The notes under the pieces are model-generated. The model was not told the DNA's origin. It worked only from the letters and a program-made list of their open reading frames with translations, and ran no database searches. Of a stretch of DNA of 64,000 nucleotides, positions 57,493 through 63,960 are shown piece by piece. Made by a program: the position numbers and the translations under genes. This stretch comes from Prasinococcaceae sp. CCMP 1430. Lineage: Eukaryota > Plantae > Prasinodermophyta. Where the stretch lies: NCBI GenBank assembly GCA_013416795.1, contig RQSC01000520.1, forward strand, positions 12,046 through 76,045, given 5' to 3'. Numbering within the stretch: the first letter of the stretch is position 1; each line of letters opens with the position of its first letter.

Positions 57493-59185
57493 TCAGTGCT
57501 TCGTGACAATCGTGCGGCGCTCGGAGAACGCGTCAAGCGAGTGGTGGCCCCCCTCGCGCCCGAGGCCCGAGTCTTTCATTCCCCCGAAGGCAACGCGCAG
57601 GTCGCGCTGCAGCCAGCAGTTCACCCACACCGTCCCCGCATCAATGGCGCGCGCGATACGCTGCGCGGCCCCGCTGTCGCCGGCGAAGACGCTCGCCGCG
57701 AGGCCGTACTTGGTGCCATTCGCGAGCGCAATCGCCTCCTCCTCGGTGTCGAAGGCTTGCAAGCTGGTCATAGGGCCAAATGTCTCGTTCTGCGTGATCC
57801 GGTCGTCCTGCTTGGCGCCCTCGAGTACGCAAGGCGCAACGAAGCATCCTCGTTGGCAGCGCTCCGGGAGGCCGGCGGGCGTGCCACCGCCGCACAGCAA
57901 GGTCGCGCCATCGTCGGCAGCTTCTTGCAACATTCGGCGCACCTTTTCCACCTGATTAGGATGGATGAGCGGGCCGCATTGCGTGCGACTGTCCTCGGGG
58001 TCGCCGACAACGAGCTCGCGCGCGGCATCCACGAGCGCGCCGCGCACCTTGTCGTACACGGCGCGCTGCACCAGTACACGCTCGCAGCACAGGCAAATCT
58101 GTCCATTGTTGAGGAAAGCCGCGCGAGCGAGCTCCCGCCCCACCAGATCCGTATCGGCGTCCGCCATCACCACGGCCGCGTTCTTGCCTCCTAGCTCGAG
58201 CGAGCAGCGCTGCATCGCGCAAGGAGGGTGTGGCAAGCGGCGAGGGAGAGAGCGAGAGGAAAAGAGAGAGAGAGGGAGGGGAGAAGAAATAGAATGAGCA
58301 CGGGCGAGAACGTGCGCACGACCGCGTCGCCGTAGCATTCGCGCGGACTGGCATCGCGAGCAGCACACGTGCACGCGGTCGCCAGCGCGCGCGCGCACCT
58401 TAAAGAGCCTGCCGCAGTGCCCGCCCACGATGCGGCCGGTGACCGTGCCGCCGGTGAAGGAGACCATCTTGACGCTCGGGTGCCTCACGAGCGCGTCGCC
58501 AGCGCACGCGCCACGGCCGTGGACCACGTTGAAAACACCGGGGGGGATGCCCGCCTCGGCGACGATCTCGCCAAGCGCGAGCGCTGTGAGCGGCGACCAC
58601 TCGCTGGGCTTTGCCACCACGGTGTTACCCATGGCGAGCGCGGGCGCCACCTTCCACGTCAGCAGGTACAGCGGCAGGTTCCACGGCGTGATGAGCGCGC
58701 AAACGCCGTGGGGCGAGCGCTCCTCGTAGTTGATCACGCCGTCGGACAGATGCGCAGGCGTGGCGCCGGCCTCGTGGCGCACGAAGGATGCGAAGAAGCG
58801 AAAGTTCTCCTCTGCGCGTGCGACATCCACCACGCGCGCCAGCTGGCGCGGCTTGCCGCAGTCGAGGCTCTCGAGCAGCGCGAGGTCGTCGGCGCGGGCG
58901 ACGATGGCATCGGCGACGCGGACGAGCGCGTCGCAGCGTCGGTCGACGCTCCAGCCGCGCCATTCGGCGCCCGCCCTCCGCGCGGCCGCCACCGCCGCGT
59001 CGACGTCCTCCTCCGAAGAGTCGGCGACGAGCGTCAGCTCCTCGCCGTACGCCGGGGCGATGTTCGAGAGGGCGTGCGCCGGAGCGCCGCCGCCGCCGCC
59101 GCCGGCCGCCGCCTCCGCCNNNNNNNNNNNNNNNNCCGCCCCAGCCGCCCCCGCCAGCCAACCGCAGCGCCCCGCTGCGCCGCAT
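57493..59185 (-). CDS. ALDH8A1: 2-aminomuconic semialdehyde dehydrogenase-like (ALDH8A1); intron 58398-58210; N-gap 59120-59135 in the 5' part
   Basis: LITPWNLPLYLLTWKVAPALAMGNTVVAKPSE, SFTGG, ELGGKNA, FLNNGQICLC (catalytic Cys), VWVNCWLQRDLRVAFGGMKDSGLGREGG. Confidence 0.88.
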
Positions 59186-59374
59186 GCGCGTGCGCGTGCG
59201 CGCGCCCGCGCGCGCAATCCCGACGCGCCTCTTCGTTGCGCAGTGTATCATACCCACGGGAAACTCTTTTTGGCCCGGCGCGCGAGTGCGCGCGCGCGCG
59301 CGCGCGCGCCCGTTTTTTTTTTTGCGCGCGCGTCAGTTCCCCCCTTCGAAAACGCCGAACGATGTGCATTACTG

Positions 59375-59418
59375 TAACCCTGATTTAACCCTACAGTATA
59401 CTGTAATTGTAACCCTAA
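59375..59418. promoter_or_regulatory. Telo-box-like cluster (TAACCCTGA, TAACCCTAC, AACCCTAA) in the ALDH8A1/KMO bidirectional promoter
   Basis: Three AACCCT motifs within 44 bp of an AT-rich island. Confidence 0.45.
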
Positions 59419-59734
59419 CCTCGACGCAACGTTTTTTTTCCCACAAGCGCGCGCGTTCCGGGGGCGCGTTCCGCGGGTTGAGACGATCGTTGGGATTGAT
59501 TGATTGACGCCGGAGCGCTTCTCACTTTTCGGCGGAGCGAGCGGGCGTCGCTCGGCCCGCGCGCGCGCGCTGCCGCGCGCATCGGTGCGCAAGCAGCTGG
59601 GGGTCGTCGGCGCGCTCGTCGGCGCGGGGGGGGGCTCGAACGGACACTCGTGGGCGCGCGCGCGGCCCAGCCGCGGGAGCAGGCGCAGGCGCGGGGGCGG
59701 GGACGGGGACGGCGGTACGCGGCCCTAGGACGGC

Positions 59735-62268
59735 ATGGTGACAATGTCGCAGGACACGCCGCCCGTGGTGGTCGTTGGGGCGGGGCCGGTCGGCTGCGTG
59801 CTGGCGACGTGCCTTGCGCGCCGCGGTCGGCGCGTGCGCGTGTTCGAACAGCGCGCCGACCCCCGGGCGGGCACGGCGGGCTGGGGCGCCGAGGGGCGCT
59901 CGATCAACCTGGTCGTCACCGGACGCGGCTTCGCGGCACTCGAGCGCTTCGGCCTCGCCGACGCGCTGCGCGCCATCTCGGTGCCCATCCGCGGCCGCAT
60001 GGTGCACAAGGCCGACGGGTCCACCGCGTACCAGCCTTATGGGATCGGCCACGAGGCCAACTACTCGATCTCGCGCGGGGAGATGAACAAAGAGCTCATG
60101 ACGCTCGCGGAGGAGGTGCGAGTGCGCCCCGAATCGGCCCTTCGCGCGCGCAGCGGCACCTCCAACAGCCGCGCCTGTGCCGGCGCCGCCCACACGCCGC
60201 GCGCGACGAAGCTCGCGCTGACCGCGCGGCGAAACTCCCGCACACACACACCGTCCCCATCCTCGTGCGCGACGCGCCCGCGCCGCAGGCCGGCGTTGAG
60301 ATCGCCTTCGGCGCCTCGTACGATGCGAAAGCGAGCGCGCCGCTCGCCGGCCGACACGTGGTGATCACCGCCGACGGCTCGCGGGTGGAGGTGCCCGCGA
60401 AGACGTACGTCTTTGCGGCCGATGGCGCGGGCTCGCGCGTACGCGCGGCGCTCGCTGCGGAGTGCGCGCGCGGCGAGGGCGGCGAGGTGACCTTCAAGGC
60501 GCGTAAGGAGCCGCTGGGCCATGGCTACAAGGAGGTGCTCTTCCCGCTGGGCAGGGACGGCGCGCCCACGATGCGCTCCGACGCGCTGCACATCTGGCCG
60601 AGAGGCCATCACATGCTCATGGCTCTGGCCAACCTGGACGGCTCCTTCACGGGCACCGTCTATCTGCCGGAGGAAGGCAAGGACAGCTTCGACGAGTGTG
60701 CCCAGGCGGGCGAGTTGGGTTCCAAGGACTTCTTTTCAACGCACTACCCCGACGCCACGCCGCTCCTCGACGACGAAATGCTGGACGTCCTGCTGCCCGC
60801 CGAGCGCGGCGGGGGCGCGCTGGGCATGCTGGGGACCATGCGAGTCTCGACGTTCGCGCCCGCGCCCAGGCTGGCGCTCATCGGTGATGCCGCACACGCG
60901 ATTGTACCGTTCTTCGGCCAGGGCTGCAACTGCTGCTTCGAAGATTGCGCGACGCTCGATGCAGCCATCGAAGCGGCTGGCGGCGCCGCCACCGACGCCA
61001 AGCTCGACGTGGCGGTTGCGGCCTGGGCGCGTGAGCGCAAGGTCAATGCTGACGCCATTGCTGACATGGCGCTGGAGAACTTTGAGGAAATGCGCTCAAA
61101 GGTGGGTGACGCGGCCTTCCTGCGCAAGAAGGCGCTTGAGCACGCCGTCGAGGAGGCCATGCCGGAGATGATGCGCTCGCGCTACGCGATGGTCGCGTCG
61201 TCGACCATTTCGTACGCTACATGCTTCCAGGCGGGCTTGGCCATTGAGGGCATCCTGGCGGAGCTCGCGGCGTCCATGGAGGATGACGCGCCCGCCGAGG
61301 CCTTCGATCGCCCGCTCGCGCGTCGCCTCATCGCCGAGCGCCTCACGCCCATACTGCACGGCGCGGGCGTGTCCGACCTGTCGTTTGGCTCAGGTGGCGC
61401 CAAGCGGAAGGTCGGCATTCTCGGATACGGTCATCTCGGGCAGCACCTGTACGGCGCTATCCAAGACGGCGCGCCGGGCACTGAGGGCCTCGAGGTTGCG
61501 TTCGTGTGGAATCGCTCCGCTGACAAGCTCGAATCGCTGCCCGAGGCGCTGCGCCTGACGGGCGACGCCTCGGTGTGTGTGCGCGAGGCGCAGGCGCGCG
61601 GCGTCGGCGTGGTGGTCGAGGTAGCGCATCCCAGCATCTCGGTGGCCCTCGCAGCGCCCCTGCTGCGATCGGGCGTGGACTTCGTGTGTGGCTCGCCCAC
61701 GGCGCTCGCCGACTCGAAGGCTGAGGCTTCCATGCGCGAGGCCACCAAAGGCGTGCAGAGCGGTGGCTTGTACATTCCCAGTGGCGCATTCTGGGGGGCG
61801 CAGGACGTCCAGGCACTCTCCAACCGCGGCGGCCTCGCCGAGCTTGTGGTCACCATGAAGAAGCACCCGTCGAGCTTCAGGCTGAACGACGCCACCTTGG
61901 ACGCGAAGCGCGAGACGGCGACCAAGGAGGGCTCTGGCGAGACGCTGCTGTACGAGGGCCCCGTGCGGGGGCTGTGCCCCCTTGCGCCAAATAACGTGAA
62001 CACGATGGCGTGCGCGGCGCTCGCGGCGGCGGGCTTGGGCTTCGATGGGGTGACAGGGAGGCTGGTCGCGGACCCCTCCCTGGTGACGCACGAGATCGAA
62101 ATTGAGACGCGCGGGCCGACTCGCCCGGACGGCTCGCGCTTCAGCTGCGTCACCAAGCGGTCGAGCCCCGCGCCTCCCGGTGCAGTGACCTCAAAGGCCA
62201 CATACGGCTCGTTCCTGGAGAGCCTCGTGCGCGCAAGGGGGCGCGGCGCGGGCGTGCACTTCGTGTGA
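59735..62268 (+). CDS. KMO: Kynurenine 3-monooxygenase fused to C-terminal ASPDH (aspartate dehydrogenase domain); exons 59735-60115, 60289-62268, 786 aa
   Basis: KMO: VVGAGPVG, GRSINL, HGYKE, LHIWPRG, MALANLDGSFTGT, GDAAHAIVPFFGQG, AIADMALENFEEMR. ASPDH from ~61400: VGILGYGHLG, VVEVAHP, GSPTALAD, GAFWG, LYEGPVRGLCPLAPNNVNTMA, GAVTSKATYGSF. No stop between them. Confidence 0.92.
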
Positions 62269-62435
62269 TGAGTTTTTCCTGTAGAGCACATGTATGTACT
62301 TTGTGTATCGAAGAAGGTGCCCAACTGCGCCATTCGCCACCTGCGCGTGCAGCGCAGCGCGTGCGTGGAGTCGGCAGGGCCGAGGGGCACGCTCGCGCGC
62401 AGAGGGTCACTTGAAGCACTGTACGTAATTAATTA

Positions 62436-63960
62436 TTAGGGCGCCTTGTTGCCTACCGCTCGGTCCTGGCGCTCGACGCGCACCCGCCCCCGTTTCTGCG
62501 GATGTCCGCGGTGCTGCCGGCCGCGCGCTGGTAGCACAGAGAAGGGCCCATTCTTCTCGGCAGAGTCGGCGCGCTCGACAACCACAAAGCCGTCCGAGCG
62601 CATGCGTGCGAGTGCAGCTTCGAGTGCGTCGCCGTCCGCCTTGCCGAGCTCGTACGTGTCGGCCTCCCACGCGGGCGCCAGCGCCTGTGTGCCCGCAGCT
62701 GCCTCCCCCTTTGCCTGCGCCTGGTCGCGTGCGCGGCTCTGCGCGCGCGCGCGCTCGAGCTTGACGAAGGGCACGAAAGAGCGGCCGTTGGGCCGATAGC
62801 CCCTGCCGGGCATCGCGCGCAGGTGCGCCCACGCGCGCACCACCTCGCCCTTGGAGCACCAGCCATCGATCAGCGTGTTGTGCGCCTTCGGACGGCGGCG
62901 GAGCGAGTCAGCGGCGTCGCCTGGGTGCGCGTCGTGACGAGCGAACACTCCACGCGCGTGGACGGGTTGCGCGTGCGCGGGCCCATCGAAGCTCGAAGCG
63001 CGCGCGCGCGCATGCACGCACCTGCAGATCGGCCGCCACGCCCGCGTCGCGCATCTGCTCGAGAGTGAACTCGGCGGCGCTCATGTCGCCTTCGCGGCAG
63101 TAGTGCGCCATGAGCGTGGAGAACGAGACCACGTTGGGCGAGAGTCCCGCCTGCTGCATCTCGGCCAGTGCGCGCTCGGCACCAGCGATGTCGCCGACGT
63201 GACACCGCGCCTGCGCGCGCGGCGCATTGTTCGCGCGGCGCGGGGTACGGGCAGCGTGTCAGCGCGCGCATCGTACGCCAGCGCTCGCGACACGCTCGAG
63301 CGCGCCGGTGCACGGGCAGACGCATCGAGGTGGCGCGCGCGAGCGCGCGCGCACCCGAATGAGCGTGTTGAAGGTCACAACGTCCGGAGCGACGCCCGCG
63401 CGTTCCATGTCCGCCAGCGTCTCATCCAGCGCTCGCACGTCGCGCGCATCGCCGTGCGCGCGCAGCAACACGTTGAACGAGACGACGGTAGGCGGCGGTA
63501 CGCCGTCGGCTCCCATGCGCGCGAGCAGGGCGCGCGCGCTGCGGACGTCGCCCCTGTCGCAGCACCACGCGATGACCGCGTTGTAGCTCACCGCATCGGC
63601 CTGCACGCCGGCCACGCGCATCTCCTCCACGGCTGCGAACGCGGCGGAGCCCTCGCCTCGCGCCGAGTGCCACCGGAAGAGGGTCGTGTACGTCACCACG
63701 TCGCGCGCCACCCCGGCGGCCGCCATGTCGCGCAGCGTTTCGTCCACGGCAGGCCCATCGCCGGCATCGACCGCGCCTTTGAGCAGCGTGTTGAAGGTCC
63801 ACGCGTCTGGCTCCACGCCTCGCTCGGCCATGTGCGCCAGCACGGCGCGCGCGCCGGCCAGGTCGCCTCGCACGCACTTGTCGCGCAGCGACTTGTTGTA
63901 CGCGAGCACGCGCCGCGACGAGCCGGCGGCGGCGGCGTTCCCGATGGGGGGGGTGGTCTG
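62436..63960 (-). CDS. Pentatricopeptide-repeat (P-type PPR) protein, about 8 repeats, multi-exon; 5' end probably outside the window
   Basis: 35-aa repeats: PDAWTFNTLL, RDVVTYTTL, ADAVSYNAVI, PTVVSFNVLL, PDVVTFNTLI, PNVVSFSTLM, AHNTLIDGWC. Confidence 0.9.

Follow-up and report, generated by a model that had tools for sequence, protein, structure and literature searches.

A spliced gene joining kynurenine 3-monooxygenase to a putative 2-aminomuconate reductase in a prasinodermophyte alga

Kynurenine 3-monooxygenase (KMO) hydroxylates L-kynurenine with NADPH and O2, giving 3-hydroxykynurenine, and in animals the enzyme ends in a membrane-anchor tail. 2-Aminomuconate-6-semialdehyde dehydrogenase (AMSDH, or ALDH8A1) gives 2-aminomuconate as its product, which is the substrate of 2-aminomuconate reductase (AMR). 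Here we describe a gene in which KMO is fused to an aspartate dehydrogenase (ASPDH)-type domain, read here as AMR. The gene lies in Prasinococcaceae sp. CCMP 1430 (Prasinodermophyta) on a 64,000-nucleotide stretch of contig RQSC01000520.1 (GenBank assembly GCA_013416795.1, positions 12,046 to 76,045; G+C, ~70%); this whole stretch is called the window, and coordinates refer to it. We consider it very probable that this is a genuine gene for a bifunctional kynurenine-pathway enzyme, KMO plus AMR, beside the AMSDH that would supply the AMR substrate.

In a preprint of June 2026, human ASPDH was found by its co-evolution with kynurenine genes; the recombinant enzyme did not oxidize L-aspartate but used NAD(P)H to convert 2-aminomuconate by reduction into L-2-aminohex-3-enedioate (Km, 36.5 uM; kcat, 2.9 s-1), and its catalytic His223 was located two positions upstream of its prokaryotic counterpart, with the His alpha-carbon displaced by ~7 A (bioRxiv 10.64898/2026.06.05.730449). 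The same preprint described the ASPDH/AMR family as "largely restricted to metazoans," contrasted a "metazoan branch" with the fungal deaminase, left the step after AMR open, and does not mention a fusion of AMR. The first-pass annotation of the window had held that eukaryotic ASPDH has no firmly established reaction, which is out of date since this preprint; its statement that co-evolution had suggested ASPDH as the missing 2-aminomuconate reductase proved right, and more strongly than put there, as there is now biochemistry on the human enzyme. A fusion of two other enzymes of the pathway, KYU-HAAO, was described in Prasinoderma coloniale, which has a kynurenine pathway and a genome with 69.8% G+C (PMC7455551). 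That pathway was proposed to serve picolinic acid synthesis, and neither ASPDH nor a KMO-AMR fusion is mentioned in the paper (PMC7455551).

The fusion gene, its transcript, and its conservation

The fusion gene consists of two exons separated by one intron (Table 1). Its open reading frame (ORF) begins with an ATG at 59735, and exon 2 (60289-62268, forward strand) stays open for 659 codons, with a stop codon at its end; the predicted product after splicing has 786 amino acids, in which a linker of 17 residues separates a complete KMO from a complete ASPDH-type domain. Pfam searches returned pieces of FAD_binding_3 in exon 1 and in exon 2, followed over exon-2 residues 379 to 638 by NAD_binding_3 (E = 4e-10) and Asp_DH_C (E = 2e-21). 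No stop codon, untranslated region, or start codon lies between the two domains; Met is absent from the linker and from the residues just beyond it, and the AMR part opens with KRKVGILGYG. The first-pass claim that exon 2 runs without a stop from a complete KMO into a complete ASPDH-like domain was thus borne out by the ORF, the Pfam families, and the structure matches. The linker that had been quoted, GAGVSDLSFGSGGAKRK, was found at 61360-61410, and the ASPDH part contains each of the motifs that had been quoted for it (VEVAHP, LYEGPVRGLCPLAPNNVNTMA, and PGAVT).

By its sequence, the N-terminal half is a complete FAD-dependent KMO. Exon 1 aligned with residues ~4 to 129 of the human and Pseudomonas fluorescens enzymes (E = 3e-19), and exon 2 aligned with residues ~146 to 435 of the 460-residue P. 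fluorescens KMO (E = 4e-39). The 10 best solved structures for each exon were all KMO, with the next families at about E = 1e-6, and all 30 invariant KMO columns of a 31-sequence alignment were kept, as seen in P0001, the exon-2 allele. The motifs of class A flavoprotein monooxygenases are present as VVGAGPVG (GxGxxG), AADGAGS (DG), and GDAAHAIVPFFGQG (GD). In a full-length model of an orthologue (P0309), the predicted local distance difference test score (pLDDT) was ~90 over residues 11 to 490, including the C-terminal helices, and <50 in the linker. This model was made from a KMO-only alignment (A3), and its AMR half came out poorly because that alignment is shallow there; a mixed KMO and AMR alignment (A2) was dropped, as the two Rossmann domains were mis-aligned in it. 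No strongly hydrophobic stretch was apparent by eye ahead of the linker of the fusion.

Transcription was followed in assembled contigs from two public RNA runs, X1 and X2. In X1, one contig of 2,324 nucleotides corresponded to 59791-60113 joined to 60287-62287, with the intron removed exactly at its GT..AG borders and with no indel anywhere from the KMO part to the stop codon, the linker and the ASPDH part included. The same splice joint was found in X2, together with a further contig (61264-61550) that spans the linker. Since the X1 contig lacks the intron, it cannot derive from genomic DNA, and therefore a spliced mRNA covering both domains exists. Neither a missed stop codon or a linker indel nor separate transcripts, outcomes against which the first-pass annotation had warned, were seen in the RNA contigs. 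The sole substitution in the X1 contig, T>A at 60536 (V>E), falls in a variable stretch and is a polymorphism within the same organism. Another polymorphism, A>T at exon-2 residue 303, distinguishes the window from P0001, a DNA-derived exon-2 allele of the same organism. The same ORF is found in independent DNA contigs of the window's species (a cluster of 16 members), and marine metatranscriptomes contain matches to the locus. These matches, together with the G+C content of ~70%, would fit an origin in P. coloniale or close kin.

The first-pass annotation had proposed that other organisms be searched for the fusion; a second species was found, with the same neighbouring gene, and no other lineage. 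The second-species protein (P0002) is 77% identical to the window fusion, and P0002, P0307, P0309, and P0312 share the KMO-ASPDH architecture, with P0309 and P0312 being full-length, intron-free products of 791 amino acids. A continuous KMO-ASPDH ORF is carried by an ENA metagenome contig (L001) and by three Tara metagenome scaffolds (L012-L014), all with a GC fraction of 0.68-0.69; the three scaffolds are those shown of the 20 contigs on which P0307 is present. Synonymous divergence (dS) between the two species is 0.8-1.0 (~0.9), and the ratio of nonsynonymous to synonymous divergence (dN/dS) is 0.30 for the KMO part and 0.19 for the ASPDH/AMR part. The linker of the second species differs through in-frame indels that keep the reading frame. 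By these sequence comparisons, the fusion is conserved under purifying selection. The position of the KMO intron is not conserved, lying after codon 127 in the window and earlier, after ...ALTV, in the relative (L001/L012). Searches with exon 2 found no protein with both halves among 1.84 billion representatives, and when 5.8 billion proteins were searched with a restriction on length, only P0001, from the same species, and P0002 were returned; no cluster with the KMO-ASPDH architecture was seen in the ESM Atlas, and no paper joining KMO, aspartate dehydrogenase, and fusion was found in the literature. Because these searches found only two species, the KMO-AMR architecture is confined to this lineage.

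One gene and one mRNA could yield two proteins, if an internal start or proteolysis in the linker freed KMO and AMR from one another and the fusion served as a device for co-expression. The linker is indeed short, variable between the species, and predicted to be disordered, and in the nearest relatives AMR stands alone, at ~290 amino acids; however, there is no Met at which a separate AMR might start, and the frame of the linker was kept across a dS of ~0.9 in spite of its indels. Moreover, no pile-up of read starts or ends was reported, a point that weighs little with data in the form of contigs. We regard this explanation as improbable and favor a single bifunctional polypeptide. As a Rosetta-stone case, the locus has one spliced mRNA across both enzymes, occurs in two species, and has stand-alone KMO and AMR counterparts elsewhere; the single protein is predicted.

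Type and probable function of the C-terminal domain

When the ASPDH domain was modelled alone (32-sequence alignment), the mean pLDDT was 95.5. The model matched vertebrate ASPDH models (Xenopus, Danio, human, and mouse) with template-modelling (TM) scores of 0.88-0.94 at 42-47% identity, as opposed to 0.71-0.83 at 20-27% identity for prokaryotic L-aspartate dehydrogenases; the values were 0.88/0.91 and 42% for AlphaFold human ASPDH and 0.91/0.94 and 45% for the Xenopus enzyme. By sequence, the domain is 45-52% identical to animal ASPDH and 45-62% identical to eukaryotic ASPDH. The nearest solved structures are the Thermotoga maritima and Archaeoglobus fulgidus enzymes, and the T. maritima ASPDH was matched only at E = 1e-5 by sequence. 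Among the 32 aligned eukaryotic sequences, 27 columns are invariant, including EVAHP, GSPTA, LAPNNVNTMA, and the His of THEIEIE (fusion residue 728, encoded at 62089-62091), which shares its sequence alignment column with the vertebrate catalytic His (human His223). With respect to T. maritima His193, His728 lies two residues upstream when the alignment is run ungapped from the ADP motif and three residues upstream in the aligner's gapped version; in the sequence alignment no His occupies the His193 position, where the window carries I or E. The identities, the TM scores, and the clade-invariant His all agree with the first-pass description of the ASPDH part as animal type and are consistent with a domain that works as an NAD(P)H-dependent AMR.

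Metagenomes, MMETSP, and EukProt contain many eukaryotic ASPDH proteins that stand alone and score at least as high as the animal ones, such as those of Stereomyxa, Perkinsus, and Capsaspora. Maximum-likelihood analysis placed the two fusion proteins as sister (support, 100/100) to six stand-alone proteins, and the three genes of this six-protein clade that were looked up all adjoin kynurenine genes (Table 1); no kynurenine neighbours were found at four ASPDH/AMR genes outside the sister clade. Judged by sequence, AMR occurs outside animals, in a marine alga and other protists, and often within kynurenine gene clusters. An Ntn-hydrolase recurs in the clusters of both L006 and JGI 3300072015, and the L006 aldehyde dehydrogenase (ALDH) has NFD where the window ALDH has NFR. 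The ACMSD-PhzF fusion of the JGI contig (705 amino acids) is made up of the domains Amidohydro_2 (ACMSD-like) and PhzC-PhzF. The 976-codon ORF of L003 may be either another fusion or an intron read-through.

The C-terminal domain could instead act as a true L-aspartate dehydrogenase and provide iminoaspartate to quinolinate synthase, in which case the fusion would join the aspartate and tryptophan routes to quinolinate and NAD. This explanation would suit the Pfam families of the domain, which are those of aspartate dehydrogenase, and the report that P. coloniale has both NAD pathways (PMC7455551); it is at odds with 20-27% identity to the prokaryotic enzymes versus 42-52% to animal ASPDH, with the position of the domain inside the eukaryotic clade, whose invariant His it keeps, and with the lack of both a His at the His193 position and close kinship to the prokaryotic L-aspartate dehydrogenases. 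In addition, human ASPDH is without L-aspartate dehydrogenase activity (bioRxiv 10.64898/2026.06.05.730449), the neighbouring gene is of the AMSDH type, and the genes grouped with the sister genes are KYNU, ACMSD, and AMSDH, not nadA or nadC. We therefore hold a true L-aspartate dehydrogenase to be highly unlikely and retain the assignment of the domain to AMR.

The AMSDH-type neighbour and leads to the step after AMR

The fusion gene stands head to head with a gene assigned by its sequence to the AMSDH/ALDH8A1 type of ALDH (Table 1). AMSDH entries were the best matches of both of its exons (206 and 186 bits), with a margin over other ALDHs that is clear for the C-terminal exon and small for the N-terminal exon. 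The protein keeps the catalytic ELGGKN (Glu) and GQICLCC (Cys) motifs as well as NFRFFAS and WLQRDLRVAFGG, aligned with AMSDH structures; the arginines of the NFR and RDLR motifs are presumably the two substrate-carboxylate arginines of AMSDH/ALDH8A1. Its intron (58210-58398; 189 nucleotides, GT..AG) is absent from L012. An assembly gap, seen as a run of 16 N at 59120-59135, falls in the N-terminal region, and because of this run the start codon is uncertain, with ATG 59186-59184 as a possible start, and any targeting peptide is unreadable. The head-to-head arrangement with an AMSDH-type ALDH is found in both species, the L012 orthologue being 75-78% identical, and the intergenic region may hold a shared bidirectional promoter. 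When the window was searched by tblastn with KYNU, ACMSD-like, and other proteins of the L003 and L006 clusters, no further pathway genes were found beyond the ALDH and ASPDH parts. In the intergenic region, a (GC)n microsatellite precedes a T run (59286-59309), and downstream of the fusion gene, ORFs on the reverse strand (62400-63909) resemble pentatricopeptide-repeat proteins, judging from their translations alone.

Table 1. Features of the KMO-AMR locus and of related kynurenine gene clusters
Feature	Location	Strand	Content or basis
AMSDH/ALDH8A1-type ALDH (2-aminomuconate-6-semialdehyde dehydrogenase)	57493..59217	-	Pfam Aldedh, E 2e-153; best solved structures AMSDH
Intergenic region between divergent genes, ~0.5 kb	59218..59734		Sequence; divergent layout kept in L012-L014
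Exon 1, KMO N terminus (127 codons)	59735..60115	+	FAD-binding GxGxxG, GRSINL, and IRGRMVH motifs; best solved-structure matches all KMO
Intron, 173 nucleotides, GT..AG, phase 0	60116..60288	+	Sequence (GT at 60116, AG at 60287-60288) and RNA joint in X1 and X2
Exon 2, KMO part, with DG motif AADGAGS, GD motif GDAAHAIVPFFGQG, and C-terminal helical domain	60289..61359	+	KMO structures, invariant columns, orthologue model
Linker, 17 residues, GAGVSDLSFGSGGAKRK	61360..61410	+	Crossed by X1 and X2 contigs; in-frame indels relative to orthologue
Animal-type ASPDH domain, read as AMR, with GYGHLGQ Rossmann motif, EVAHP, LAPNNVNTMA, conserved His, and stop codon	61411..62268	+	Pfam, alignment, model
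Kynurenine cluster, GCA_013565615.1 (eukaryotic contig)	L006:57-5945		NAAA-beta-like, AMR, kynureninase, and AMSDH-type ALDH genes side by side
Kynurenine cluster, 12.5-kb contig	JGI metagenome 3300072015		AMR, kynureninase, ALDH, NAAA-beta/CBAH Ntn-hydrolase, 705-aa ACMSD-PhzF fusion, and KMO-like FAD_binding_3 gene
976-codon ORF beside a stand-alone AMR	L003:3284-6214	-	ACMSD-like N terminus; C terminus matching kynureninase residues 182-289

The same gap, 0.6 kb upstream of the fusion gene, and the use of assembled RNA contigs might suggest that an assembly error had joined two neighbouring genes or that the transcript contig is chimaeric, but an artefact of this kind is practically negligible given the same ORF in the independent same-species DNA contigs, on the second-species Tara scaffolds, and in the 791-residue P0309 and P0312, and given uninterrupted coding sequence between the domains.

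Another fusion bears on the step after AMR. The protein P0014 (L002:47-2314, forward strand), from a Tara metatranscriptome, consists of a complete AADAT/KAT-II aminotransferase, which matched human AADAT at E = 4e-111, and an AMR-type ASPDH domain, connected by a linker of ~27 residues. Its ORF begins at ATG 47 and passes from one domain to the other without a stop codon or a further start codon, and its AMR domain groups with the ASPDH of Perkinsus olseni. No further AADAT-AMR fusions were found in a length-restricted search seeded from P0014, which is a singleton on two contigs. This fusion is a candidate pointer to a transamination after AMR, and another candidate, for handling the beta,gamma-unsaturated product of AMR, is the PhzF/PBLD-type isomerase of the ACMSD-PhzF fusion. 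To our knowledge, human PBLD is an orphan. Neither AADAT nor PBLD/PhzF is mentioned in the preprint on human AMR (bioRxiv 10.64898/2026.06.05.730449), and the titles and abstract openings of the literature naming both PBLD and kynurenine gave no sign of a mechanistic link. If either PBLD or AADAT converts L-2-aminohex-3-enedioate into 2-oxoadipate, no gap would be left in the human catabolism of tryptophan. It is conceivable, although rather doubtful, that the AMR branch is an older eukaryotic module and not an animal invention and that the fusions and clusters of protists name the still-missing enzymes after AMR. Two further domain combinations were seen, namely, a KMO fused to a PF04199 "cyclase" domain of the kynurenine formamidase family (P0164; 701 amino acids) and an HpcH_HpaI aldolase domain paired with ASPDH (P0284; 424 amino acids).

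Meaning of the fusion and comparison with known systems

In the mechanism that we propose, the KMO and AMR domains would act independently, joined by a flexible linker, with AMR yielding L-2-aminohex-3-enedioate from the 2-aminomuconate that the neighbouring AMSDH would supply. The two steps are not consecutive, being five reactions apart, and therefore substrate channelling is probably not the purpose of the fusion; more likely, it would ensure that an early and a late NAD(P)H-using step are expressed in equal amounts and at one location. The fusion gene and the divergent AMSDH gene may form a co-regulated unit, and the alga would run the full oxidative branch (ACMSD, AMSDH, and AMR), beyond the part leading to quinolinate and picolinate. 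The presence of AMSDH and AMR genes argues for flux beyond aminomuconate semialdehyde, and if the genome belongs to Prasinoderma or close kin, these genes would argue for full catabolism and not mainly for picolinic acid synthesis.

Several points weigh against a bifunctional KMO-AMR. The 786-residue protein and both of its activities are predicted, and the AMR activity is carried over from a human orthologue at ~42% identity that is itself known from a preprint. The shift of the His relative to prokaryotic ASPDH comes from sequence alignment and differs between the ungapped and the gapped version (two versus three residues). The RNA support consists of assembled contigs and not of single long reads, so that an extra internal transcription start or cleavage in the linker may occur. 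Finally, the fused steps are not neighbours in the pathway, and any selective reason given for the fusion is a guess.

The first-pass annotation had taken the physical fusion to KMO as independent evidence for a role of ASPDH in the kynurenine pathway. This holds, and it is stronger than claimed because of the fused mRNA, the conservation in a second species, the AMSDH neighbour, and the sister genes in kynurenine clusters. Since human ASPDH was just shown to be AMR (bioRxiv 10.64898/2026.06.05.730449), ASPDH has ceased to be an orphan, and the AMR role is corroborated, not discovered, by the fusion. Moreover, a domain fusion and the conserved adjacency of the substrate-forming gene are evidence of a different kind for this assignment. 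What is new is the KMO-AMR architecture, the occurrence of AMR outside animals, which qualifies the idea of a "metazoan branch," and the set of leads to the step after AMR, for which the related fusions give testable candidates.

The locus can be set beside several known systems. With human ASPDH/AMR, the C-terminal domain shares the same two Pfam domains, ~42% identity over the full length, the invariant His, LAPNNVNTMA, and EVAHP; here, however, it is the C-terminal domain of a 786-residue KMO fusion in a non-metazoan and is known from sequence. Prokaryotic L-aspartate dehydrogenases (TM1643 and the A. fulgidus enzyme) have the same fold, with NAD_binding_3 and Asp_DH_C, but differ in their 20-27% identity, in the position of the active-site His, and in genomic context. 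The KMO half resembles the P. fluorescens and human KMO structures in its full-length match, its FAD-binding, DG, and GD motifs, and its C-terminal helical domain, whereas the fusion bears the AMR domain at the place of the membrane-anchor tail of animal KMO. Like KYU-HAAO of P. coloniale (PMC7455551) and P0164, the fusion places two kynurenine enzymes on one polypeptide in marine protists or metagenomes; the partners differ, however, and KYU-HAAO links two successive reactions, whereas in KMO-AMR step 3 is linked to one that comes five reactions further on. Lastly, the link between AMR and ALDH8A1/AMSDH in the window parallels the AMR-HAAO-ACMSD-ALDH8A1 cluster reported for Sciaridae (bioRxiv 10.64898/2026.06.05.730449).

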